Source of the DNA: Oopsacas minuta
Taxonomy: Eukaryota; Animalia; Porifera
Length of the DNA stretch: 64,000 nt
Direction of reading: 5' to 3'
Assembly (NCBI GenBank): GCA_024704765.1
Contig: JAKMXF010000133.1
Location: 496,001-560,000 of the forward strand
The stretch's first letter is position 1, and every line of letters starts with the position of its first letter. Below are positions 14,503-48,172 of the stretch, in pieces. A program made the position numbers and the translations under genes. A model generated the notes under the pieces. The model was not told the origin of the DNA. It worked only from the letters and a program-made list of their open reading frames with translations, and did not search any database.

Positions 14503-16720
14503 ATGCATCGCAAAGAACCTTTCAGTAACAAAAAGAAGAAACACCAACTTCAACAAAAACGTCATAAGAAGCAAACTAAAAATGACAAACAAACAGAGGT
14601 AATTAGACCTACAATGATATTCACTCCGGACAATCTCTCCGAGGTAGACCCAGCTTCAGACAACCCTTCTACACCCCTAGACCCTGAAAATGGAGATGAT
14701 AACTTCTTTGCTGATTCAGAGGACGAACTACAGGCAACTAATCATAAATCACTTTTATTCTCAACCAACGGTGTACACAAGCAAACACAGGGACCTGATA
14801 CAGACTTACAATTTGCTACACTAAAATTAAAACCTTACTCACTCACGAAATTTCACACTCAACCTGGTCTAAAAGAAAGCGTGAACAATCGTTTCCAGTT
14901 ACATTTTGTGAAAGAGACTGAGGAAGAGATTATCGCTAGAAAGGAGCTAGCAACTAAACCAATTACATTTGTTCCTGAGAAACAATTAGAAATATCTGTA
15001 GACGCTATTTACCCTCCTGGTACTATACTGGATATCCCTAAACGCCCTTCCTGGAGTACTAACGGTACTCGGGTAACTGTAGAGGCAGCTGAAGAGAAAA
15101 TGTTCGAAGCATATCTGGAGGAAATATATTCTAAATTCCCAATGGATTATCTGTCTTATTTTGAGCACAATCTTGAATCTTGGAGAGAATTATGGAGAGT
15201 GCTAGAGATATCACAGGTAAATACTTGTAGTCTTTGCTTTTAGTTTCATGTCATATAGGAGAGCATACTCACCAACATTATAACAATTTTCTCGGGATTA
15301 TATTTGCAAAATTTGTGGATTTTCGAATTTTCACTAGAAATCCAAGTTTTACTTCCATAAATAGCCATTTTTTCAGAATAAACTTCAGGCAATTTTTGGG
15401 AAGACAGACTGTATGCTTATACATTTAGAAACAAATTCCTAATAAACAACCTTATATTTCCAGGTAGTAATGCTGATAACAGATGTAAGACATCCAGCTT
15501 TACACTTCTCTCCATCTCTATACTCTCATGTAGTTAAGGACCTGAACAAATTCCTGGTACTTGTATTAAACAAGTCAGACTTAGTACCAGCTAGTGTAGC
15601 TATAGCCTGGAAGCATTATTTCACTAAGAACTTCCCAGGTACACACGTCATCTGCTTCTCAGCTTATCCTGACGATAAAGCCTCATTGGAGCCACAGAAG
15701 AAAATAAAACTTAGATTTCCAAGACACAGGAGAAGACTTCTATCAGAGGCAGTAGGGGTAGAAGAGCTGTTCCAGTCTGTGAAAGAGATTTATTCAGGGA
15801 AACGAGATCTCTCTGATTTGAAGAAACCAGATAATGCAGGTTATCAGGATAGTATATCGAGTGAATCATCAGGTGATGAAACTACCACTAAACCCTCTGA
15901 ACAAATCAAGAAACAAACCAAACAACCAGCTTCCAGACCTCCTCGAGCTAATATCCTAACTATTGGTATGATAGGACATCCTAACGTGGGTAAGAGCTCT
16001 ATTATAAACGGGCTAATGGGTCGTAAAGTAGTGAGTGCTTCCAAAACACCTGGTCATACAAAACACTTCCAAACAATATTCATAACAAACACTGTCTGTT
16101 TATGTGACTGTCCTGGCCTCGTGTTCCCATCTCTAGTCCCGAAACAGGTCCAGATATTGTCCGGTATGTACCCTATATCTCAGCTAAGAGAACCTTACAC
16201 TCCTGTAGGATATTTGTTTGCTAGATACCCTGCTATAATAGATCTACTCAGATTAGAGCATCCTAGAGACTCCCCATGTAAGGAGGGGGCTGCTAAGCAG
16301 GAGGTAGAATGGACCCCTCTTGACCTATGTGAAGCTTGGGCACTGAAGAGAGGGTTCTACACTGCTAAAGCTGCCCGCCCTGACATATATCGTGCTGCTA
16401 ACCACCTGCTAAGACTTGCTACAGATGGGAGAATATGTTTATACTTCAGACCACCTGGATATACAGAGCAACAGGAGCAATGGGCTGAACACCCTGAAAC
16501 CGTATCATTATTGAAAATGCAGCGCAGATCTCTACAGGAATTAGAGAGGAAACGAATGATGGATAATCATGCACCAGTATTAGATGATATAGCCATTGCA
16601 GAGATGATGATAGCTAATAGCAAACCGTTTAATAACCGAAAGAAAAAACCACCCCGTGAACCGGGAGAAAATAAATTTGCTATTCTGATGAATGATAGTG
16701 AAAATGACGATTCTTCTTAA
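14503..16720 (+). CDS. GNL1: Guanine nucleotide-binding protein-like 1 (circularly permuted GTPase); 2 exons, intron 15217-15463
   Basis: MHRKEPFSNKKKK N-terminus; SYFEHNLESWRELWRVLEISQ|VVMLITDVRHP; NKSD; IGHPNVGKSSIINGLMGRKVVSASKTPGHTKHFQT; DCPGLVFP. G4-G1-G2-G3 order. Confidence 0.92.
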
Positions 16721-17100
16721 TTTAGCTTACTTTAGATAATGATTCAGTAATTTCTTATTTCCGTTTCCAAGATAATCATTTCGAGTTGTATCATTATTAT
16801 CTTTAGTACACATATTTCATTTTGTTTCGCTGATATTTTCATATATACAACTATGCGGTTTCTATTTTGCCGATTACAAGGGACAATTAATGAATTAACT
16901 AAATTTACTTACATAAATGGGCATGTTCTCTAAATTTCTCTACTGATGGACTGCTAAAGCATAATACATCTTATTATGTAAAAATTTGTGACGAAGTAGC
17001 TATTTATAGATTATGCATGCATTATTTAGCTATAATTTCCTATTAATATACTTATACATTGCAATTATTGAACTAAACCGAATTTACTATTCTAAGAAAC

Positions 17101-19937
17101 ATGTCTTCTTCTGCTTCAAGACTTAAGAGTCATTGTAAGACTGGAGGAGAATTAATAATCGTACGAGTAAGGAATGACACTGGCACTAAACGTATACAGA
17201 TAAAGCCATCAGCTAGCTGGGCAGATCTGCTATTACAAATCAGAGCAGTATTCTCATTGCCTAATGAGACATTCACAATCTCTATCGATCCAAAAGGTGA
17301 GTCCAATGTAGCTGGAGAATTACACAAGCTATTGTCTCAGTTAGGAGTTGTGAATGGTACTCTACTCTATTTAAAGGTTACAGGGGGTAGTGTTGATATG
17401 AGAGAGAATGAGAATGAAATGGATAGTGCATCTCCTATGGAACTATCTCCTACTTGTAAGTTTGATTATGCAGTAAAATAGCATAATTCTGAATTAATGT
17501 ATTTCTATTTTATAGTGAATGGAGAAACTATGATAAGTAAGCAACAGAACTCTCAAGCAGTCATATCACCCCAAACATACAAACCTGCTTACATTCGTAG
17601 CCTCTCTCTCAAGGCTTCTTTATTTGAGGATAATGTTGACAAGAAACTAGCTTCAGAGTCTGGGCTAATAGCTAGACAAAGAGATCCTAGTGTGTGCCAA
17701 CACGGGGCCAGAGGACAGTGTATAAACTGTGCTCCTCTAGAACCATACAACCAGACATATCTGGAGTCTCATGATCCTCCTATAAGACATCTATCTTTCC
17801 ATTCATATCTACGTAAGCTTGCTGGTGGAGCTGATAAAGGTAAATTCGTATCTCTTGAAGATCTCAGTTTCAAACTTAAACCAGGCTGTACTGAGCATCC
17901 TTCCTGGCCGAATGGAATTTGCTCCAAGTGCTCTCCGGGCGTGGTTACACTCAAGAGACAGGAATATAGACACGTAGACCTTGTACAATTTCAGGTATGA
18001 CTCTTTTTATTGTATCTTAATACAGTCAACTCCCGTTATACCTAATCTCAAGGAACCGCGATAATTTCTTTGATATAAGCGGAACTCGATACGACCGATG
18101 AAATTATGTTACTTTAACGGTTTAGATAATATTTGTACAATTTCAGACTTCGATATATCAGTGTTCGATATAACGAGAGTTGACTGTAGTCTTAATTATA
18201 GCAAAATATCTAACTGAGCTATTCACATAGGATCCTTCAATAGTAGACAGATTCATCTCTTACTGGCGTACTACAGGCTCTCAGAGAATAGGTTATCTAT
18301 ACGGACAATATGAAGAGTATAACGGAGTACCTCTAGGTATAAAAGCTACTGTCCTGGCTATATACGAGCCTCCTCAGATATCAACCAGAGACTCAGTAGA
18401 GTTATTAGAAGACTCAAGAGAGTCTGTTGTAGAGTCACTGGCTGATTGGTTAGGGATCAGGCGTGTAGGGTGGATATTCACTGATCTAGAAGCTTCTCTT
18501 GAATCAGGGAAAGTTCATTATAAGAGACATATGCATACATTCTTCCTGTCAGCTGAGGAATGCATTATGGCTGCTAACTTCCAGAATAAACATCCTAATC
18601 TGTGTAAGCTGGCTAGTATGGGGAAGTTTGGTAGCAAATTCGTTACTGTGTGTGTGGAGGGTAACCAGGATAATGAGATAGAGATGAGAGGATATCAGGT
18701 AAGTAATATATACTCACGATGTGTCGTAGAATAATTAATTTAATCAATCATGTTTGTGCATACAGCTTCAGTGGTATTCGCCTTTTAGCAAGGGATATTC
18801 GTGCTAAATACTATTTGCAAATAGGCGAACTTCACCGTATTGAGCTTCCCTGATTTCACTGAAATATTTCGTAATTATTCATCGAATAATGTTTGCCCAG
18901 TATAGATAATTTCAACAATAAACTTATAGAAACATACTGTCTCTACTTATCTCATATTTTAGGTATCTAACCAATGCATGGCTCTGGTAAGAGATGACTG
19001 TCTAGTCCCATGCTTAGACGCCTCAGAGCTCGGTTACATAAGAGAATCTACCAGTAAGCAGTACGTACCAGACGTATACTACAAGACTACTATACAGAAG
19101 AGAGAGATTACTCTAATAGGAAAACCTCTACCTATGGACTTTATGTTATTAGATATTCCTGTATCTGCGCCTATGTCAGATCAACTACAGCAGGGTATGA
19201 AGCTACTGGGGAGAGCAGATCCATTCCCTATAGAGAATAGAGAATCTGCTAGACAGCTACAGAACAATAATACTCTCATAGCTCATCTATCTGCACAGCC
19301 GCCTAACCAATTTATAGGGACTATAGCGGATTTCCATCTGCTGTTCTTTTTAACCGTGAGTTGGTAAATATCATAATACTACAATGGGTATTGCTTATAA
19401 GAACACTGATTATAAGATAATACCGAAATCAAGACCATATAGTCTATAAAACGGTTCTCGTATACACATGCATTTTGTTACCCAATAGTGTTCTTACAAA
19501 TAATTTATAAGTATAAAACCACTGAACTGTTCTATATACTATTTAAATTGGATTTACAGTTTTCAATGAAGAAAATTAAAATTTTTATTTTCGAAATTTA
19601 TGCACCGAGTCAATATAATTCTTCTAATTTGCATACTCACCATCCTTCTACTCTACAGACAACAGACCTAACAGACTTAACTCCACACCTCCCTGAACTA
19701 TGTGATGGTATCCGTCGTGAAAACGTTGTACAGGTATACAACTGGAAAGAGAGTAACCCAGCTTGGAGGACAATAGAAGAATGTGTCCGTATTACGTCAG
19801 AGACACTCAGTCCCCGTTCTATGCAGCAGGGACCTCCCACATACCCCTCAGGTTCTGTCCTGTGGTCTTGTAAAGAGTGTACATTCTTCAACTCTTCAGG
19901 AGATCAAACCTGTTCCATGTGTGGTACTAGGAAATGA
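17101..19937 (+). CDS. NPLOC4: NPL4 (p97/Cdc48-Ufd1-Npl4 adaptor) with C-terminal RanBP2-type zinc finger; 5 exons
   Basis: UBX-like N-terminus (VRVRNDTGTKRI), CQHGARGQCINCAPLEPY, HLSFHSYLRKL, CTEHPSWPNGICSKC, QRIGYLYG, AIYEPPQ, RVGWIFTDL, FLSAEECIMAANFQ, SKFVTV, DFHLLFFL, and WSCKECTFFNSSGDQTCSMC. Confidence 0.93.
18023..18186. mobile_element. MITE family A, best-preserved copy (164 bp; Tc1/mariner-pogo-type), in an NPLOC4 intron
   Basis: TA|CAGTCAACTC...GAGTTGACTG|TA: 10-bp perfect terminal inverted repeats flanked by TA, no coding capacity. Confidence 0.85.
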
Positions 19938-20106
19938 TAATTGAGTATATTAGTTAGCATGAAACCTGTTTATTGAAAAGCTTATTGTGTCTCTTCTCAG
20001 TTGTTAAATAATTTTTCTCCAAAATTCTCTTACAAAAACTCCTACAAATATTTTCTATAGAAATGTATATGCTATATTTATTACGTTACTATTTGGAGTT
20101 ATTTGT

Positions 20107-21384
20107 ATGGAATTTAGTGACAAGATTTGCTACACTCGAGAAGATGGAGTTGCTACGTTCAGACAACAGCTGGCAGATGAGGAGGAGACTACGCCACGAG
20201 CTCTGTGTGCTGTCAAAACTCTGATATTCTTCCTTAAAGGTAGCAAGGATCCTACTATTTCACAAGTAAGTATATATGTATTTTCACACGGATATATGTA
20301 ATTCAGAGTTTGCATGATTTCGTATTATGGATTGCATAGATCCTTGAGTCTCTATTGGAAATGCAGAAGCTGATGGAAGGAGCTACTAATAGTATTAGTG
20401 TTACTTCTGGGTGTGAGATATTTCGCAGATTCATAACATTAGTGAGTATGGACGCACTAGACGCAGAGGAGTGCAGAGCTAAAATGATTCACAGAGGGAT
20501 TGTCTTCTATAAGAGGTGTTCAGAAGCGCAGAATATAATATCTAAACTAGCTCTACCATTTATCCGAGATGAAGTTCGTATATTAACTCATTCATATTCT
20601 AGAGTAGTGTACAGCTTGATAAGTGCTGCTACACAAGCTCGTAAGAGGGTTAGAGTTATTGTTACGAGGGCTGAGAAAGCTCCTGATACAGGGGACGATA
20701 CTACTTCTGTAGCTAGAGGTGAGAAGATGGTTGAGATGCTAAAGAAGATTGGAGTACCATGTGCTCTAATACTAGATTCTGCTGTTGGTTATACCATGGA
20801 TAAGGTAAATTGAGATTCATCCTTTAATATTAATGAGAGCTGCTTTTATCCGAGTTTCAAGTTCCGAAAGTAATTTGCCATTTGTTCAGAATTCCAGAAA
20901 TGGCTTTCATTAATATTAATAAATATTTATTGTCATCAACTCCCCGTCATATCGAATATATAGAAATACCCGCTTATATAGAAGTAATCATCGCGGTACC
21001 TTGAGCTTCAATATAACGGGGGTTGACTGTATATTGTAGGTAGATCTAGTACTGGTGGGAGCAGAGGGTGTGGTAGAAAATGGAGGTATAATCAATCAGA
21101 TAGGATCCTATCAAGTAGCAGTACTAGCTAAGGCTTGTAACAAACCATTATATGCTGCAGTAGAATGTTATAAATTCATCAGGATGTATCCTTTGAAACA
21201 GGACGATTTGAGTGATCTAAACCCCTCAGGAGCTGGTACTCTGGAGAAGAACAACTCTACCCTCCCTGTCTCTAACCCCTGGGTAGATTATACCCCTCCC
21301 TCTTATATCTCTCTCCTCTTCACCGATTTAGGAATATTGACACCATCTGCTGTATCTGATGAGTTAATTAAACTTTATTCATAG
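20107..21384 (+). CDS. EIF2B1: Translation initiation factor eIF-2B subunit alpha; 3 exons (introns about 20266-20339 and 20806-21039)
   Basis: [33 protein letters not shown]|[63 protein letters not shown] match the family. Confidence 0.93.
20936..21029. mobile_element. MITE family A copy (reverse orientation), in an EIF2B1 intron
   Basis: tcaactcccc...ggtaccttgagcttcaatataacgggggttgactg|ta is the reverse complement of family A internal motifs and terminus. Confidence 0.65.
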
Positions 21385-21510
21385 CATCTTTTAAATAGTT
21401 AAAATTCTATGGAGAGAGATCAATGTATTTGTCAAGAGGATATATAATATTTATTTAAGTAATTTGGCTTATCTAGTGAACCAATATTTCTTGCACTATT
21501 AGCTTTTAGC

Positions 21511-23049
21511 ATGTCAACAATACAAAGCTGGCTTAGCAAGGTATTCCACAGATCTCCTAAAGAATATCGTGTACTATTCCTAGGGCTAGATGCTAGTGGT
21601 CGTACTACTACATTATACAAGCTAGTGCTTGGTGAAGTAGTAACTACTATTCCTACTATTGGATTCAATGTAGAGAATTTTACTTACAAAGATCACACAT
21701 TTACTGCATGGGATGTTGGAGGCTGTGATAAGATAAGACCTCTCTGGAGACATTATTTCCAGAATACGCAGTGTGTTATATTCTTCGTAGACAGTGCTGA
21801 TCGTGAGAGAATAAATGAATGTGAATGGAGTCTTGGATTACTACTGACTGAGGATGAGCTCAAGAATACACCTCTGTTAGTATTCGCGAATAAACAAGAT
21901 CTACCAAATGCTATGAGTGTAGTGGAAGTGACTGAAAAGCTAAGTCTTAAAAAGGTAACTGATCGTCCATGGTACGTACAGGCTAGTTGCGCTCCGACAG
22001 GAGATGGTCTATATGAAGGGATTGAATGGATGATAAGTGTTCTAGATAACCAAACACCTATTGCTAATAAACAAAGTATTTCTCCAAAAAAAGCTGGAAA
22101 CAGAGATGCAAAGAAGGATGATTTAGATCAGATATTGGAGAGCTGGTTGGAGATAGAAGATAATACTGATGATGAGTTTATAGCTGCTCTAGAAGACTAC
22201 ACACTAGATAATTGGGATCACAGAACTCATCTCAGATTAGCCTGGATATATCTCACTCGTCACGGGAGGAGAGAAGGAATGAAAAAGATTTTCTCTAGCA
22301 TTAAGAATTTTATTGATAACAGTCCTAGAGCAAGGAAAACAACCTTCCATGAGACTATGACGTATTTCTGGACACATATGGTACACTATGCTATCGAGGC
22401 AACTAAAAACCCAACGAAAGACTTCAAAGGATTCCTGTTAATGAATCCGCAGTTAGCAAACGGAGGACTTTTCTTAGAATATTTCACTAAAGATTTAATG
22501 TTAATGAAGATGGAGAGTCGTAAACAAGTAGTACTCCCTGATATTAAGCCTCTACCTAGCATAATATCCTCAACTAAACCTCACTCACAATTTATTCTCC
22601 CTGTGGTTAAAAAGCAAACTCTGACTGATGCTGAGTTTCTAGAGAAGTTTGAAGAGAAGTCTCTTAACCAGTGGGGCCTGGAGGAGGAGATCAGAGCTGT
22701 ATATGTGTGTTTATTTATGAAAGGAAGGAGACAGGGTACTAAACTGGTACACAGTGGGATGGAGAAGTTTCAAGGTAGTGGCTACAACCTGACAGCAACA
22801 TACTTCTGGATACAAATGGTATGGTATTACATGTGTGTAGAAGGTATTGATAAAGTAGCTGGTAGTGAAGATCCTACTTCTACGCATGTCGATTTCTCTA
22901 CTTTCATTGAAAAGTATTCAGTAATTCTAGATCGTAAACTTCCTCTTAAATACTATTCGAGTAAAGTATTATATGATGATCCTAAGGCTGCTGTAGAGTT
23001 TGTTCTACCGGACAAGAAGCAGCTACCATCTATCATACCTAAGAAATAG
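21511..23049 (+). CDS. Atypical ARF-family GTPase fused to two tandem copies of an uncharacterised about 130-aa domain; intronless
   Basis: N-terminal about 180 aa is ARF-like ([46 protein letters not shown]). The C-terminus has two internally similar repeats: DDEF...W.H..H.R...Y...FW..M..Y...LPD.K.LPSII and TDAEF...Y..T.TYFWIQM..Y...[11 protein letters not shown]. Confidence 0.85.
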
Positions 23050-23546
23050 AGCAATTATTTTGACATTTTATTTATGATTAGATTGAATTCGTGTGTTAAA
23101 TATGTATCATAAATTTGCAAGAAGAATATATTTTTATAATCTGAGTCATAGCATATCTATTTGTGAGATATATGGTTTAAAATCCTGTTAGGAGGTTCTA
23201 CAGAGGTTCTCTTATCTTATCGGAGTGTCTGTTATGGAGAAGTTACAATATATGTCTAATTATCTATGGATGTGTGTAGGATAATTATTGCAACAATTTT
23301 TTTTGAATTATGTGGACAAGAGCTAGAAGTGATCTAAGAGTAAGGTTGCATTTATTTTACTGTAAACCTCTCATATTATATTACCCGTATAATCGGTACT
23401 TATAAAGCCAATCACAAGCTCAATTCCATTAAAATTTACTGTTAATCACTTCCAAAAAACACTACATATATCTCCTTATATGAATTCATTTGTTGAATAT
23501 TTGTATATTTTAAGCTAGCAACAAGATTAGGAATTAGGAATTTAGA

Positions 23547-25499
23547 ATGGAGCTAGAGAATATCGTAGCTAACACAGTACTAATGAAAGCAAAGGAGAGC
23601 ACACGTGATGGGAAGGGAAGGAGTAAGAGATGGCGTAGTATGCTACAATTTTCAGAACCTACTGATTGTGAATACCTTAGAGATACATTAGAGCTTAGTT
23701 ATGATCAAGTTGTCAACCAGCAACCAATTGGAGAATTGCTATTTGAAGAATTCTGTGATACTGATAATCTATTAAGTAGTTGTTGGAAATTTATCCGCAG
23801 GTTAGAAGACTACAGAACACTCCCTAATGAAAAACTCAAGGACCATGCTCAACAGATATTTGAGGAGTTTCTTACCCCACAGCCTAAGCTAATCTCTCCT
23901 CCTGAACTTGAGGCCAATGAGACTCTTTGCAATTCTGGAGCCGAGGCGTATCCAAATGTAATTAACCACTCTCTTCTTGAGGTCAGTAAATAGTGATTGT
24001 GTTTACAGACAACTCTTGTTATATCGAACACGGATATATCGAAGCCTGAAATTGTACTAACATGGTCAAAGTAACATAATTCCATAGGGTATATGGAAGT
24101 AATTATCGCTATCCCTTGAGCCTCGATATACGGGAGTTGACTGTAGTTTTATCTTAATATCTAAGTATTATTGTTTTCTGAGTAGATCTTATCACCTGAG
24201 GTTATAGAAGAGACACGAGTCTCTATTTCAGAAGCAGCTACTTCTAGATCATTCAACAAGATAGAGATTGAACTGAGGTCTTACTTCATTGGTGAACCTT
24301 TTCAGCTGTTTAAAAAGAGCAAATATTTTCTAAGATTCTTACAGTGGAAGCATTTAGAAAGACAATCTGTATCTGAGGATAAATTCAGGATATTCCGTGT
24401 ATTAGGGAAGGGAGGGTTTGGAGAAGTATTTGCTGCACAGTCTAAGATATCTGGGAAGATGTATGCTATCAAGAAGCTAGAGAAGAAACGAGTCAAGAAG
24501 AAGAAAGCTGAAGACTTAGCTCTGACTGAACGTAAAATATTAGAATTGGTAGACTCACGGTTTGTTGTAAACTTAGCATACGCTTACGAAACAAAAGACA
24601 GTCTCTGTCTAGTGCTTACCCTAATGGGAGGTGGAGAATTGAAATACCATATCTATGAGATAGGACATGCAGGGCTACCGTTAGAACGAGCTGTATTCTA
24701 CGCAGCTGAGATAGCTGCTGGATTATCACATTTGCACGATAAACGGATTCTATACAGAGATATGAAACCTGAAAATATTCTCCTAGATGAAAGAGGTCAC
24801 GTCCGTATTTCAGACTTAGGTCTAGCTATACGCGTACCTGAGGGTACAAAGGTAAAAGGTCGTGTGGGTACAGCTGGGTACATGGCTCCTGAGGTGTTGA
24901 AGAATGAATCTTACATATTCGCGATTGACTGGTGGGGATTAGGATGTGTCATATATGAAATGATAGCGGGTAGACCTCCATTTCGCGAAAAGAAGGAGAG
25001 AGTGAACAAAGATACACTTGATAATCGTGTGCTACATAAATCACAGCAATACACTCCTAAATTCAATGTAGAGGCTAGTCTCATATGTACAAGGCTGCTG
25101 GATAAGAATCCATCTACACGATTGGGTGGAAAGAGAGAAGTATTCGAGGATCCGTTTTTCAACACAATTCACTGGCCACAGCTAGAATCCGGTAAGCTTG
25201 AGCCTCCATATGCTATTGATCCACGAGCAATATACGCCAAAGATGTAATGGACATTGATCAGTTCTCATCAGTACGTGGAATTAACCTTAATGATAATGA
25301 TGTACGTTTCTATGAGAAATTCTCAATAGGTGCAGTCCCGTACGCTTGGCAGAGAGAAGTAATTGAAACAACTGTGTATCATGATCTTAACCAATTCCCA
25401 GTAGATGGGTCTTTAGTGCCCGTAGCATATGGACGGGGGCGACGCAACAATGGAGGTGGCTGGAAGTCTCTGTGTTGTTGTTGTTTTGGTGATTCTTGA
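23547..25499 (+). CDS. G protein-coupled receptor kinase (GRK4/5/6-like); 2 exons, intron 23982-24185
   Basis: MELENIVANTVLMKA N-terminus, RGS-homology region (QQPIGELLFEEFC), RVLGKGGFGEV, YAIKKLEKKR, YRDMKPENILLD, DLGLA, GTAGYMAPE, AGC tail, and a C-terminal CCCC possible palmitoylation cluster as in GRK4/6. Confidence 0.93.
24006..24143. mobile_element. MITE family A full copy (reverse orientation), in the GRK intron
   Basis: TA|CAGACAACTC...GGGAGTTGACTG|TA with internal gcctgaaattgtac and cccttgagcctcgatata, reverse complements of family A motifs. Confidence 0.8.
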
Positions 25500-25985
25500 A
25501 ACTGATATTTCATCTCGTCGATTGTTAATCTTAATTTCAAAAATACGTTTTGATTCTATTTTATATGTTTTATTACATAACAAACAACTTTAAACGATAC
25601 ATAAAATTATTTATTATTAATATTATTTTGTCCCCGCCTAATGGTTGTTTGTATATTTCTTTTATCGCCTCTATTTTTGCTAATTAGGTTTAATTATCTA
25701 TTGTATTAATTGTATTAAATAGTTCATGTTTTGAATTTAGTTAATGCTCAGGTGCTGTTAGAACGCTTCCAGGGGAGAGGTATTTAAATGTGGCAACCCC
25801 CATTCATATATATTTCGGTTTATTTCATATGTGGAATATACGAGTTAAAATATTTCAATAGGACATTTCTAACCAGCAACAAAGGTTAAGGAATTTGTGT
25901 GTAGAAACGGTTGTTGGTTAGAAAATTCTTTACAGTAAATACTCTTACTATTGTGTGATATTTGCAATATTTAGCTCTCTAATTA

Positions 25986-27650
25986 ATGGCTGAAGAACGG
26001 AGTTTACCAGATATACGAATGACCGATGAGGGAGACAATAAGAATCCTGAACCTATAAGTACAGTAAAACCAAAAGATACTCTATTCGGAAATGAATCTG
26101 ACGTTACTCTTTTGATAAGATATCAAGCTAGTATGGTGCTAGCTGGTGTAGGAGATGCTCTTGGGTATAATCATGGTAGATTTGAATTTTGTGATTCAGG
26201 AGATTTGATAATGAAAGATATTGAAAAGAAATATAATGGCATTGCTAACTTAAAACCTAACGAGAGATCAGAATTCATGTTATCAGATGATACTATCATG
26301 CATATTGCTACTGCAGAAGGACTAGTTAAATCTTGGGAGAATGAGTTTGAACTTTTGACCATGATTGCTATTGAGTATGTCAATTGTATGAATGATATGG
26401 GAGGACGTTCTCCTGGTGGATGTTGTATGGGCGGAACAGATATGATCAGGAAATCTTTGGATAGTGATAAATCCTATGAAGAAAATCCTCCTTTTGTAAC
26501 CCCGTATAACAGAAAGAAAGGCGGGTGCGGAGCTGCCATGAGGAGTGCACCCATTGGACTACTATATTCACATGAAGAACAGATGGATCAATTGATGAAG
26601 GTAAGTGACAGTGCTTTACTTAAATCAGTCAAATATCAAAGTGTAAAAAGGTATGACCATGTGTAGGCTCGAACTCGGATTTTGCTTTCATTATATTTTA
26701 CGGATTCATTTGGGTCGAAAAAGATAACCGACCCAGGCAGGATTCGAACCTGCAGTCTCCTGATTCGTAGTCAGACGCGTTAACCGTTGCGCCACTGGGC
26801 CTTATAACTCATATTAATCAATTGGAGAATATAAAAGCAAATTCTTTTTACCTTCACTTTTTCCGAATTCTAAGGTGGCAATTGAGGCTGGTCGAATGAC
26901 ACACAATCAAACAAGTGGATTTCTAGGATCCTTAGCTACAGCTCTATTGGTACATCTTGCGATTAGAAAAGTTTCTCCTATCAGCTGGGGACGAATAATC
27001 CTCAAACAATCTCAAAGAGTATTGCAATATTGTACTGAAAATGATCAATATCATAAGGATATATCCCATATATCTGGAGATTGGGGTTATTTCCAAAAAA
27101 GTTGGGAGAAGTACCTTTCTAGGAGGAATATATTGATCAATGATGGCCCTATTGATTTTAAATTTGATTATTGGAATGGAGATAATCCTGATATACCTTC
27201 TTATAAAAACCATGACAAGTTTGTTACAGAGGTAGTTTTGTGAATATAGTAATTGCTTGACATTTGATCTTATTTATACTTTTCTAGATATCGTATGCTG
27301 GATGGGGAGGTAGCAGTGGGCATGATGCTCCAATGATTGCTTATGATGCTGTATTGTATGCATTGCAAGTTAGAGAGAGAGATGGAGTTGTAAAGGGTTG
27401 GGAGAGTGTATGTGCTTTTGGTATGTTTCATTGTGGAGATAGCGACAGTACAGGAATTATATCAGGAGCTATTTGGGGCGCGATGTTTGGTTTTGAAGCT
27501 TATAAAGCAAATCATGAAAGACTTGAGTATAGGCAACAGTTATGCAATCTAGCAGAACAGTTATATTTTAGGAGTGAGAAGTTATTAGTTGATGATCCAC
27601 TGAGACCTGTTAAACATGATGAACTTGATGTTTGTAGTGCTGAAATATAA
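25986..27650 (+). CDS. ADPRH: ADP-ribosylarginine hydrolase (ARH1); 3 exons (25986-26600, 26875-27231, 27288-27650)
   Basis: Y.ASMVLAGVGDALGY, SDDTIMHIATAEGL, GGCGAAMR, VAIEAGRMTH...GFLGSLATAL, WGGSSGHDAPMIAYDA, MFHCGDSDSTG.I.GA..GA. Confidence 0.92.
26729..26801 (-). tRNA. tRNA-Arg (anticodon ACG), inside ADPRH intron 1, antisense
   Basis: Minus strand GGCCCAGTGGCGCAACGGTTAACGCGTCTGACTACGAATCAGGAGACTGCAGGTTCGAATCCTGCCTGGGTCG: 73 nt, anticodon loop CT-ACG-AA, T-arm GGTTCGAATCC, A and B boxes, and a T5 Pol III terminator at 26722-26718. Confidence 0.95.
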
Positions 27651-27914
27651 AAATGTAATTGATACACAAGCTCCTGTTGATAATTCAGTACCAACAGATG
27701 AGTTACTTGATGAGGGTATCAGTATATAACAGCTGAGAGGTAACACGTAATTACCACGAATATTTTAGGTATACACAACCAAGATACACATACGGTACTG
27801 TTTTGTGTACATTTTCCCTGACTGCTCTGAGTTTATATTTGTATTTGTATTTATTGTTTCAGTAATTGTGCTTAAAATATAGGAAATGATTATTATCAAT
27901 GCACATAAATTATT

Positions 27915-29207
27915 TCAAAAATTTGAATTACAAGAGTTCTTCATATATTGTTTGATTTCTTTCACAAACTTCATCTCATCAATTGCTGTTTCGTAACAAC
28001 ATCTATCTTGTTTTCGTTCTTTCTTCAATTTGTTTCCAAGTATTTTCACAGCCCCAAATAATAGTGGATCTGTCTCAATCTTATCTAAACAGTATTCTGA
28101 AAATTCTTGATTTAATTGTCTTAACTCTGCTATTTCAATCTCTAACTTAGCTCCTTTCTCTCTTTTCTTTCTATCAAGTTTGAGTTTCATTCTGTCATAC
28201 AATAGATTATCAATGTATGAGAATTCTATTGATTTATTCAGTAACCTATCATCTATGTAATAATCATCTTTTAATGGCTGTGCAGCTACGTTTTGAGTGA
28301 AATATACAAAATCTTCTATTTGTAGATTCAGCTCATCTTTCAATAATATTAGAGATTCATCAAATTCCTCTGAAATAACAAAGAAATCAATCTCAGATTC
28401 CATCCAATTCAGGAATCTCTCCACTTCTGCAAGGTATATAGGTTCATTCTCAATTTCAGATCTCGTTATACCTCTTGGTATATCAAAATCACTCAATCCG
28501 AGATCAAAAGACATAGAATTCCATAACAGCTGCAATGGATTAATCATGATTTGACGTAATCTCGGTACATATCTTTGTGGTCTATCTAAAAAATCTTCAA
28601 ATGTTGCACCAACCCTTCTAAGCGTCTTAGCATATCCATAATAATTAAATCCTGACTGCATCTGTTCTAACGGGCGTCTTAATGTAGCCACAATAAATGT
28701 ATCTTCTCTCATGAATCTAGATAGAATATTTCTTCCATTATACCTGGAGTGTATATTGAGTATATCATATTTTCCATTTTGACAAGGTGGATAAAAGGAT
28801 TTGAAAGACTTATCAATTGTTCTTGGATAGAATTGGTGTAAATTTGGATCTTTAACCATTACAAAGCTTAATCCTCTACGGATTCCGAACCGATATAATA
28901 TACTTGAGAGTGTTGTGCTTCCTGTTTTATGGACTTTTAACAGAGCTATTGAAGTTTGTTCATCCTCATTTACCTCTGAGATTCTACACCTCATCATATT
29001 ACTTGTTGGATATGCAAATGTTGAGGTATTTTCTCCAGTTGCTACTACACCACTTGTAATGGTGTTAGGATAGAAATTGTTTTGAGTTGCCTCATAGCAC
29101 TGTAATAGTCTCGCATGATAGTAACCTAGTATTATTATCACTGTAATAAATAGAAGTGTTGTTACTACCCACTTTATCCTTGATCTCATTAACATCACAT
29201 TTTTCAT
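27915..29207 (-). CDS. Galactose-3-O-sulfotransferase family, type II membrane protein; intronless
   Basis: N-terminal TM, LLKVHKTGSTTLSSILYRFG PAPS-binding motif, HSRY, TLRRP.EQM.SGFNYY, NSMSFDLG, ISEEFDESLILLK. First ATG at 29207; the ORF-track start is TTG. Confidence 0.88.
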   Translation of the reverse strand: MKNVMLMRSRIKWVVTTLLFITVIIILGYYHARLLQCYEATQNNFYPNTITSGVVATGENTSTFAYPTSNMMRCRISEVNEDEQTSIALLKVHKTGSTTLSSILYRFGIRRGLSFVMVKDPNLHQFYPRTIDKSFKSFYPPCQNGKYDILNIHSRYNGRNILSRFMREDTFIVATLRRPLEQMQSGFNYYGYAKTLRRVGATFEDFLDRPQRYVPRLRQIMINPLQLLWNSMSFDLGLSDFDIPRGITRSEIENEPIYLAEVERFLNWMESEIDFFVISEEFDESLILLKDELNLQIEDFVYFTQNVAAQPLKDDYYIDDRLLNKSIEFSYIDNLLYDRMKLKLDRKKREKGAKLEIEIAELRQLNQEFSEYCLDKIETDPLLFGAVKILGNKLKKERKQDRCCYETAIDEMKFVKEIKQYMKNSCNSNF

Positions 29208-29612
29208 AAGACATAAACTCAAAATTTTAATATATACCTATCAAATGGAATCTCTCCAGGTATACAACCAACCGCTATACTCCTTTGTTCTTCATTAAAT
29301 AGAATTTATACAAGATCCATTTTTGTGATTTCCAATCCTGAATACTATAGTATTAGAAAAGTTGTTTCATCCAAATATATTGAGAGATAATGCACAATTG
29401 TATTTTATTACCTATGGCCAATGCTAGGACTACAATACAAAGGAACCTGCATAACCCAACACTCGTTGGGATGTGAAAATTGTGTCGGATTAGCAAACTG
29501 TCAGATTATACAAGTGTGGGGTTATCAGCTGGTTTCACTGTACTGCATGGGTAATAATTTCATTAACTAAGGATTTATTAAATTAGACATATTTCCTAAT
29601 ACAAATGTTAGA

Positions 29613-37395: not shown

Positions 37396-48172
<10,777 letters not shown>

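Follow-up and report, generated by a model that had tools for sequence, protein, structure and literature searches.

The question raised by this locus is what kind of gene an animal genome carries when a small GTPase of the Arf family is followed, in one uninterrupted frame, by a tandem pair of helical domains that are absent from the family libraries, and from where such a gene may have come. The open reading frame (ORF) in question lies at 21511-23049 in a 64,000-nucleotide stretch of the genome of the glass sponge Oopsacas minuta (GenBank assembly GCA_024704765.1, contig JAKMXF010000133.1, positions 496,001 to 560,000), and this whole stretch is referred to as the window. Coordinates are those of the window, and all features are on the plus strand unless otherwise stated. 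The ORF runs without interruption through 512 codons and a stop, and GenBank annotates one single-exon 512-aa product at the same locus. An earlier note, made from the letters of the sequence without database searches, had described the product as an ARF GTPase joined to a Lys-rich linker and two copies of an uncharacterised domain, and had proposed a functionally unknown and possibly horizontally acquired system. The locus is the single-copy Arl17 gene of O. minuta, encoding one polypeptide, and it belongs to a named family rather than to a new system. The best explanation of the data as a whole, to which we assign a probability of roughly 75%, combines this identity of a resident single-copy Arl17 with a mechanism in which a GTPase switch works together with a helical effector.

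Arl17 was described by Vargová et al. (2021, Genome Biol Evol 13:evab157; PMC8358228) as a GTPase derived from Arf1 that carries behind it one, two or three non-identical copies of a new domain of about 100 residues; this domain gave no HHpred match and was also found alone in bacteria. In the same study the family was traced to the last eukaryotic common ancestor (LECA) and was found to be very patchy, very often lost and of 'completely unknown' function. Membership was assigned by the C-terminal domain feature; the family tends to be divergent and its monophyly was without statistical support (PMC8358228). The window protein was found to possess an Arf GTPase domain, two copies of the C-terminal domain, and a C-terminal domain that is without homology to described domains and has bacterial stand-alone forms. 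The assignment to Arl17 was made because the architecture of an Arf domain plus domain copies is the defining feature of the family. The patchy distribution and the lack of a known function that had been proposed for the protein thus agree with the published description (PMC8358228), with the correction that the system has had a name since 2021.

The family was readily recovered with the C-terminal part of the protein. A search with residues 205-512 gave 209 proteins, nearly all of about 500 aa and with an Arf domain, from green algae, bdelloid rotifers, two sciarid flies and many protists, and one of the matches, from Chlamydomonas, is labelled 'ARLP2, atypical'. With the C-terminal region alone, rotifer, green-algal, amoebozoan and fungal fusions of the Arl17 type were retrieved with E-values down to 1e-105, including proteins from Adineta vaga, a species named in the Arl17 paper (PMC8358228). 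When a profile of 44 domain copies was compared with 1.84 billion representative proteins, 3,401 clusters were found at E <= 0.001 and 1,322 at E <= 1e-10. All multidomain proteins checked among the top matches (top 150) were Arf fusions with one to four domain copies, and the three-copy forms of about 700 aa were fungal (chytrids, ascomycetes). Fusions of this kind in fungi and protists, which the earlier note had mentioned, were thereby confirmed, and the same fusion is found as complete ORFs in protist transcriptomes. One database protein of 1583 aa combines an Arf domain and one Arl17 domain with a complete Rad50/SbcC-type ATPase with zinc hook, and is probably a merged model of two neighbouring genes.

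The GTPase domain comprises residues 8-176 (21532-22038) and matches Pfam PF00025 with an E-value of 1.9e-65. It is 65% identical to Arf1, and the modelled domain superposes on GTP-form Arf1 structures with a root-mean-square deviation of about 1.1 Å (Foldseek), the modelled conformation being GTP-like. An N-terminal amphipathic helix is formed by residues 3-11 (21517-21543) in the AlphaFold2 model, and the sequence gives it a hydrophobic stripe of I4, W7, L8, V11 and F12.

Residues were counted over 97 Arl17 sequences, five from sponges and 92 from other organisms. Ser occupies position 2 in each of the five sponge sequences and in 58 of the 92 others, and Gly is found there in 0/97. The P-loop, G-L-D-A-S-G-R-T at residues 25-32 (21583-21606), carries Arg31 in the place of the canonical Lys; Arg is found at this position in 5/5 sponges and 26/92 others, and Lys in 54/92 others. 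In switch II, D-V-G-G-C-D at residues 68-73 (21712-21729), the catalytic Gln is replaced by Cys72. At this position, which corresponds to Gln71 of Arf1, Cys is found in 88 of the 97 sequences and Gln in none; the main text of the Arl17 paper says nothing about glutamine (PMC8358228). The guanine-specificity motif N-K-Q-D at residues 127-130 (21889-21900) is intact, as are the switch-I Thr and the Asp of DxxG. The NKxD residues are all kept in the sponges and nearly so in the 92 other members (N 85/92, K 90/92, D 92/92).

The GTPase domain is followed by the Lys-rich linker noticed before, here placed at residues 181-214 (22051-22152). The linker is probably disordered, with a predicted local distance difference test (pLDDT) score of 53-57. 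Copy 1 of the C-terminal domain, residues 215-353 (22153-22569), is all-helical in the AlphaFold2 model and carries the full H-x-x-H / H-E-T / P-D set. A second short linker, residues 354-371 (22570-22623; pLDDT 55-58), leads to copy 2, residues 372-510 (22624-23040), which has the same fold (pLDDT about 94-98) and has lost the His positions. Each copy is about 139 aa long. Residues 219-352 and 372-509 (about 22165-22566 and 22624-23037) align with 29% identity and 50% positives at E 1e-19 in a single comparison, and since this is far beyond chance the internal duplication is real. The Pfam match and the alignment of the two copies bear out the proposed ARF GTPase with tandem C-terminal copies.

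All three motifs quoted in the earlier note were found in copy 1 where it had put them. W-D-H-R-T-H-L-R, at residues 235-242 (22213-22236), begins a 34-residue helix; F-H-E-T-M-T-Y-F-W is at residues 279-287 (22345-22371) and has a counterpart in bacteria; and L-P-D-I-K-P-L-P, at residues 342-349 (22534-22557), lies in the extended tail of the copy. The counterparts in copy 2 are W388-G-L-E-E-E-I-R395, G424-Y-N-L-T-A-T-Y-F-W433 and L499-P-D-K-K-Q-L-P506, and the loss of His noted earlier is evident from L390, E393 and N426 at the three His positions. In the set of 97 sequences D236 and H237 are invariant (97/97), and H240 is kept in the sponge- and protist-type members and in bacteria. F286 is likewise invariant and W287 is present in 91 of the 92 non-sponge members, while the Pro and Asp of the P-D motif are invariant across the eukaryotic and bacterial members. 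The polar residues conserved from bacteria to eukaryotes are H237, H240, R242, H280, E281, T282 and D344, and R253 is counted with them in the set carried by copy 1.

The two copies have fared differently in different lineages. The full His set resides in copy 1 in the sponge and protist types and in copy 2 in the rotifer type. At position 390, 91 of the 92 other Arl17 sequences have His, whereas the five sponges have Leu or Phe; at position 426, His is found in 82/92 others and Asn in the sponges. Among the 97 sequences, loss of all three His residues in the copy other than the one with the full set was seen only in sponges. From these counts, one active and one degenerate copy, as proposed earlier, is a reasonable inference for the sponge protein, and the degeneration would be particular to the sponge lineage.

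The fold of the C-terminal domain was predicted with high confidence and without any solved relative. Copy 1 modelled alone gave a pLDDT of 94.6 and a predicted template modelling (pTM) score of 0.88, with an all-helical structure that includes the one 34-residue helix. The full-length model had a mean pLDDT of 90.5, with low confidence in both linkers. Residues beyond the Arf domain matched nothing in Pfam or NCBIfam, a sequence search of the PDB with the C-terminal region gave only a chance antibody match (E 0.13), and the best hit of the copy 1 model against solved structures was not convincing (Foldseek, E 0.84). The C-terminal region hence matched no characterised domain in these sequence and fold searches, whereas a match to one widespread in animals would, by the earlier note, have overturned its reading. 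The best match of the exhaustive VIA search, to a saposin-like protein (Z 5.2), was under the stated noise level for helical models, and a relationship with saposins is not claimed.

Before a function is considered, it must be asked whether the gene is real. An assembly contaminant, a pseudogene or a pair of genes mistaken for one could in principle give the same ORF, and a search of public runs returned no RNA run with the sponge gene. We regard such an artefact as very improbable. The gene lies on an 814-kb O. minuta contig, and its ATG is 126 bp from the stop codon of an intron-bearing animal gene of the eIF2B family, the last exons of which are at 20355-21384 (PF01008, IF-2B). Downstream follows a conserved neighbour, a gene for a 582-aa protein with RGS and protein-kinase domains (GRK-like; PF00615 and PF00069) at 23547-25499. 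Contigs of genomic DNA from four public runs (Logan) bridge Arl17 and both neighbours unbroken, and one of them spans 21086-25900 including introns. The gene order in the window at about 15470-29222 is MMR_HSR1 GTPase, NPL4, eIF2B-family, Arl17, GRK-like, ADP-ribosylglycohydrolase and Gal-3-O-sulfotransferase. A microsynteny block around Arl17 is common to O. minuta and three other assemblies, which by this synteny are presumably other hexactinellids. The orthologues in these three assemblies are 510-512 aa long with the frame intact in all, and for the two that were aligned over their full length the identity with the window protein is 80% and 73%. With the ORF continuous in four syntenic orthologues, nothing points to two separate proteins, the other finding that would have counted against the earlier note. 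The complete fusion ORFs of protist transcriptomes speak against such a division as well.

The gene is moreover under constraint. When the window sequence was compared with two orthologues, the proportion of synonymous differences (pS) was saturated at about 0.78, whereas the proportion of nonsynonymous differences (pN) was 0.04-0.06 in copy 1, 0.11-0.17 in the GTPase domain, 0.12-0.18 in copy 2 and 0.23-0.47 in the two linkers (Lys-rich linker 0.35-0.47, second linker 0.23-0.37). Copy 1 is thus the most constrained part of the gene and the Lys-rich linker evolves fastest. The low pN of the domains against a saturated pS implies strong purifying selection on all three, the His-less copy 2 included, and their pN/pS ratios of about 0.05-0.23 are difficult to reconcile with a dead gene. 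The GC content at third codon positions is 0.33 and relative synonymous codon usage correlates at 0.80 with that of the other long ORFs of the window, both in the middle of the local range. Judged by its sequence, the gene is functional and resident, constrained and native in its codon use.

Two further observations were made on the DNA around the gene. Two short dispersed repeats of very high copy number are present at 20956-21031, in an intron of the eIF2B-family gene, and at 24004-24130, in an intron of the GRK-like gene; their word depth is in the thousands, compared with about 100-240 in the flanks, and many contigs break or join there. Intronic high-copy repeats of this kind are typical of elements resembling miniature inverted-repeat transposable elements (MITEs). 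The DNA of a second organism was also found over 20286-25480, with about 97% identity in the coding parts, while the intergenic parts 22967-23439 and 25481-25900 were unaligned. This DNA probably derives either from a population of O. minuta that has diverged or from a close relative.

How, then, did a glass sponge come to carry Arl17? In Holozoa the gene has been reported in rotifers only, which was explained by horizontal gene transfer (HGT) with an amoebozoan suggested as donor, and neither sponges nor Pigoraptor are mentioned in the main text of that paper (PMC8358228). The genome paper of O. minuta mentions neither ARF proteins nor horizontal transfer (PMC10280926). The nearest named non-sponge relatives of the window protein are from the amoebozoans Stenamoeba, Cavostelium and Pyxidicula, together with one from Pigoraptor chileana (EukProt EP01137), a filasterean and as such a unicellular holozoan closely related to animals, which has a full two-copy Arl17 in its transcriptome. 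Trees and approximately unbiased (AU) tests were made with a quick search and with Arl17-type sequences only. The sponge sequences, five in all, group together with full support on a long stem; the deeper position of this clade is a polytomy, and was still one when fungi were added. The sequences of rotifers and sciarid flies make up another clade, also with full support, whose sister is the amoebozoan Ceratiomyxa, which agrees with the amoebozoan donor suggested for the rotifers in the literature (PMC8358228). A single clade of all animal Arl17 sequences was rejected (ΔlnL 135, p-AU 4.5e-9), while a clade of sponges plus Pigoraptor was not rejected (p-AU 0.71) and exceeded the free quick tree by 9 log-likelihood units. 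On these trees we conclude that the sponge gene arose independently of the rotifer acquisition.

One possibility is that an ancestor of the glass sponges took up Arl17 from a protist, for instance an amoebozoan, in an event apart from that of the rotifers, and then domesticated it. Such a transfer has slightly less than an even chance in our estimate. It would account for the reported absence of Arl17 from densely sampled Holozoa other than rotifers (PMC8358228), and for the gap in our search, where full-length identity is 73-80% in the sponge group and <=53% for the protists, with no animal sequences in between. The best non-sponge matches are the amoebozoans Stenamoeba and Cavostelium, the gene is without introns, and the free trees set the long-stem sponge clade among protists and not beside Pigoraptor. 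However, the polytomy offers no supported donor clade, and the likelihood of the free quick tree is surpassed when sponges are constrained to group with Pigoraptor. The gene is native in its composition and codon use, and its place in the gene order has stayed fixed through divergence deep enough to saturate synonymous sites. The sponge gene displays neither a supported nesting within a donor clade nor a foreign composition or structure, although it may still stem from an ancient transfer.

The intronless state, which had been put forward as a sign of transfer, was dropped as evidence, since the ALG12-like, WD40 (NLE1-like), sulfotransferase and CoA-transferase genes of the window are also single long ORFs, and the genome has many long genes with only one exon. 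At 44179-47211 an ALG12-like mannosyltransferase gene (minus strand, 476 aa) and an NLE1-like WD40 gene (plus strand, 495 aa) stand head to head, 114 bp apart and each uninterrupted, from which it follows that long intronless genes are ordinary in O. minuta. Of the proposal of an intronless and possibly horizontally acquired animal copy, the first part therefore holds and the second persists as a mere possibility.

The other possibility, which we consider about as likely as an ancient transfer, is vertical descent with many losses: Arl17 would have been present in the holozoan and animal ancestors, kept in glass sponges (and in Pigoraptor) and repeatedly lost elsewhere. The full-length Arl17 in the transcriptome of P. 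chileana (Filasterea) speaks for it, as do the sponge-Pigoraptor clade that the AU test did not reject, the LECA age and very frequent loss of the family (PMC8358228) and the fully native appearance of the sponge gene. On the other hand, losses would be needed in other filastereans, choanoflagellates, three sponge classes, ctenophores, placozoans, cnidarians and bilaterians. That a clade is not rejected does not amount to support for it, and as both branches are long, attraction between them is possible; the Pigoraptor sequence was obtained from a culture transcriptome and could be a contaminant.

Rotifer-type Arl17 was also found, deep in the rotifer clade, in the sciarid flies Bradysia coprophila (LOC119076212, on a 13-Mb contig) and Pseudolycoriella hygida. 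The flies are a further animal lineage with Arl17, which they probably received by a separate transfer.

Stand-alone relatives of the C-terminal domain in bacteria, which the earlier note had also mentioned, were found in the genomes of 337 species when an alignment of bacterial members was searched against one genome per prokaryotic species, and the 80 best loci were examined. These 80 are mostly from soil lineages (Acidobacteriota, Chloroflexota, Dormibacterota, Myxococcota, Actinomycetota, Verrucomicrobiota and Pseudomonadota). A single archaeal locus, in a genome bin of Candidatus Nitrosopolaris (Nitrososphaerota), is among them, and the other 79 are bacterial, with Archangium minus as their only cultured genome. 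The bacterial stand-alone proteins have no match in Pfam or NCBIfam, and a single-sequence word search with copy 1 returned only eukaryotic gene fragments. Copy 1 superposes over its full length on bacterial hypothetical proteins of 130-150 aa with template modelling (TM) scores of 0.84-0.88, and the motifs F-H-H-R-D-H-L-R-L-A-W, Y-H-E-T-M-T-x-x-W and C-terminal P-D-x-x-x-L-P are common to bacteria and copy 1.

The neighbourhood of the bacterial genes was analysed for hints of function. A MarR-type regulator was the only neighbour family to recur across phyla at the 80 loci, and it occupied 12 of 159 adjoining positions compared with 1 of 284 non-adjacent ones (Fisher p 3e-5, a value that ignores shared ancestry). 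The linked domain proteins are 39-89% identical to each other. In the linked Chloroflexota loci the MarR gene is co-directional in 8 of 9 cases, with a 4-bp overlap in 5 of 9, and in Terriglobia it is divergent; an independent metagenome contig displays the same pairing, followed by a glyoxalase-family gene. The link gives a hint, but no more, of a function connected with a small molecule or with stress. Neighbours encoding a PMT_2 glycosyltransferase, a debranching-enzyme-like protein, RecQ, glutamate dehydrogenase, prephenate dehydratase, AspRS and an ABC transporter were discarded, as each is confined to one clade and was interpreted as inherited synteny. The neighbours of single stand-alone proteins were inconsistent, and two such proteins are exons on probably fungal contigs.

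Taken together, the identity of the gene and the residues of its product suggest how the protein might work. The GTPase domain keeps the motifs that would bind guanine, magnesium and phosphate (NKQD, the switch-I Thr and DxxG), and because the catalytic Gln (Cys72) and the canonical P-loop Lys (Arg31) are missing, it most likely acts as a switch that changes conformation on binding nucleotide, while hydrolysis would be slow, unconventional or absent. Recruitment would probably occur through the N-terminal amphipathic helix, which may still bind membranes, and not by a myristoyl anchor. The C-terminal pair would then serve as a built-in effector, in which copy 1 is likely to provide a ligand- or metal-binding, or catalytic, site, and copy 2, with all three His residues lost, is probably a structural pseudo-partner. 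The adjacency to MarR-type, ligand-responsive regulators in bacteria, probably often with co-transcription, suggests a domain that senses or processes a stress signal or a small molecule, and in Arl17 this activity may have been placed under, or be positioned by, an Arf-type switch.

Several points weigh against this mechanism and the identity joined to it. The P-loop Arg could abolish nucleotide binding, in which case the GTPase domain would be a pure scaffold. The full-length model has a pTM of only 0.62 and the domain arrangement is accordingly uncertain; H237/H240 and H280/E281 could, judged by the secondary structure, sit at opposite ends of a helical hairpin, and any site might then form between copies or subunits. 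The loci linked to MarR are 12 of 80 (15%), concentrated in two phyla, and the count is not corrected for shared ancestry. The evidence for the sponge gene comes from genomic DNA only, and a 2026 review still gives the function of ARL17 as unknown. With these points taken into account, a resident Arl17 that couples a GTPase switch to a helical effector remains the explanation that we favour.

A more far-reaching version, which we hold to be unlikely, would be that the gene is an ancestral holozoan one, surviving among animals only in glass sponges, and that an H-x-x-H/H-E small-molecule- or metal-binding module, wired to MarR in bacteria, was captured by a hydrolysis-deficient Arf switch to give a sensor-switch protein. 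If this is true, it would be a paralogue of LECA age that is absent from all model animals. Arl17 is one of three Arf-family paralogues that are dated to LECA yet missing from every model organism. A conserved, syntenic and constrained glass-sponge gene changes the published picture of rotifers as the sole animal or holozoan carriers, and together with the Pigoraptor sequence it reopens the question of Arl17 in the animal ancestor. New here are a second independent animal lineage with Arl17 and a holozoan protist sequence that makes vertical descent conceivable. For biochemistry, new starting points are given by the family-wide loss of Gln, the P-loop Arg and the presence of one complete and one degenerate His/Glu copy, and also by a fold without solved relative and several hundred soil-bacterial homologues of a domain that is in no family library.

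The protein may finally be compared with known systems. With Arl17 as published it shares the N-terminal Arf1-like GTPase, the tandem non-identical helical copies and the patchiness. It differs in its host, a glass sponge, where the only holozoan or metazoan carriers of the published study were rotifers, in a copy 2 that is without all three His residues, one of which is kept in 91/92 others, and in a GTPase domain that, at 65% identity to Arf1, is not strongly divergent overall. Rotifer Arl17 (Adineta, Rotaria), a published case of HGT between eukaryotes, is likewise a two-copy Arl17 in an animal genome. However, the C-terminal region of the sponge protein is only 35-37% identical to it, and the rotifer proteins keep the P-loop Lys and have the full His set in copy 2, not in copy 1. 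The bacterial stand-alone proteins of 120-160 aa have the same predicted fold and the motifs H-x-x-H-L-R-L-A-W, H-E-T-M-T-x-x-W and P-D-x-x-x-L-P, but unlike the sponge protein they are single-copy forms without a GTPase, 28-38% identical to copy 1.

Canonical Arf1 and Arf6 have the GTPase fold in common with sponge Arl17, at 60-65% identity, as well as the switch-I Thr, DxxG, NKxD and the N-terminal amphipathic helix. In contrast to them, sponge Arl17 has Ser2 and lacks the Gly2 myristoylation site, and it carries DVGGCD and GLDASGRT in the place of DVGGQ and GxxxxGK[ST]. A canonical Arf is a single-domain protein of about 180 aa, whereas sponge Arl17 is 512 aa long with a 330-residue C-terminal extension that holds two extra domains. 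In TRIM23/ARD1 and other multidomain proteins of the Arf family, an Arf-type GTPase is likewise covalently joined to a presumed effector module. The Arf domain of TRIM23 is C-terminal and follows RING, B-box and coiled-coil domains of known function. Compared with TRIM23, the order of the domains from N- to C-terminus is reversed in sponge Arl17, and the partner domain, whose function is unknown, is duplicated.

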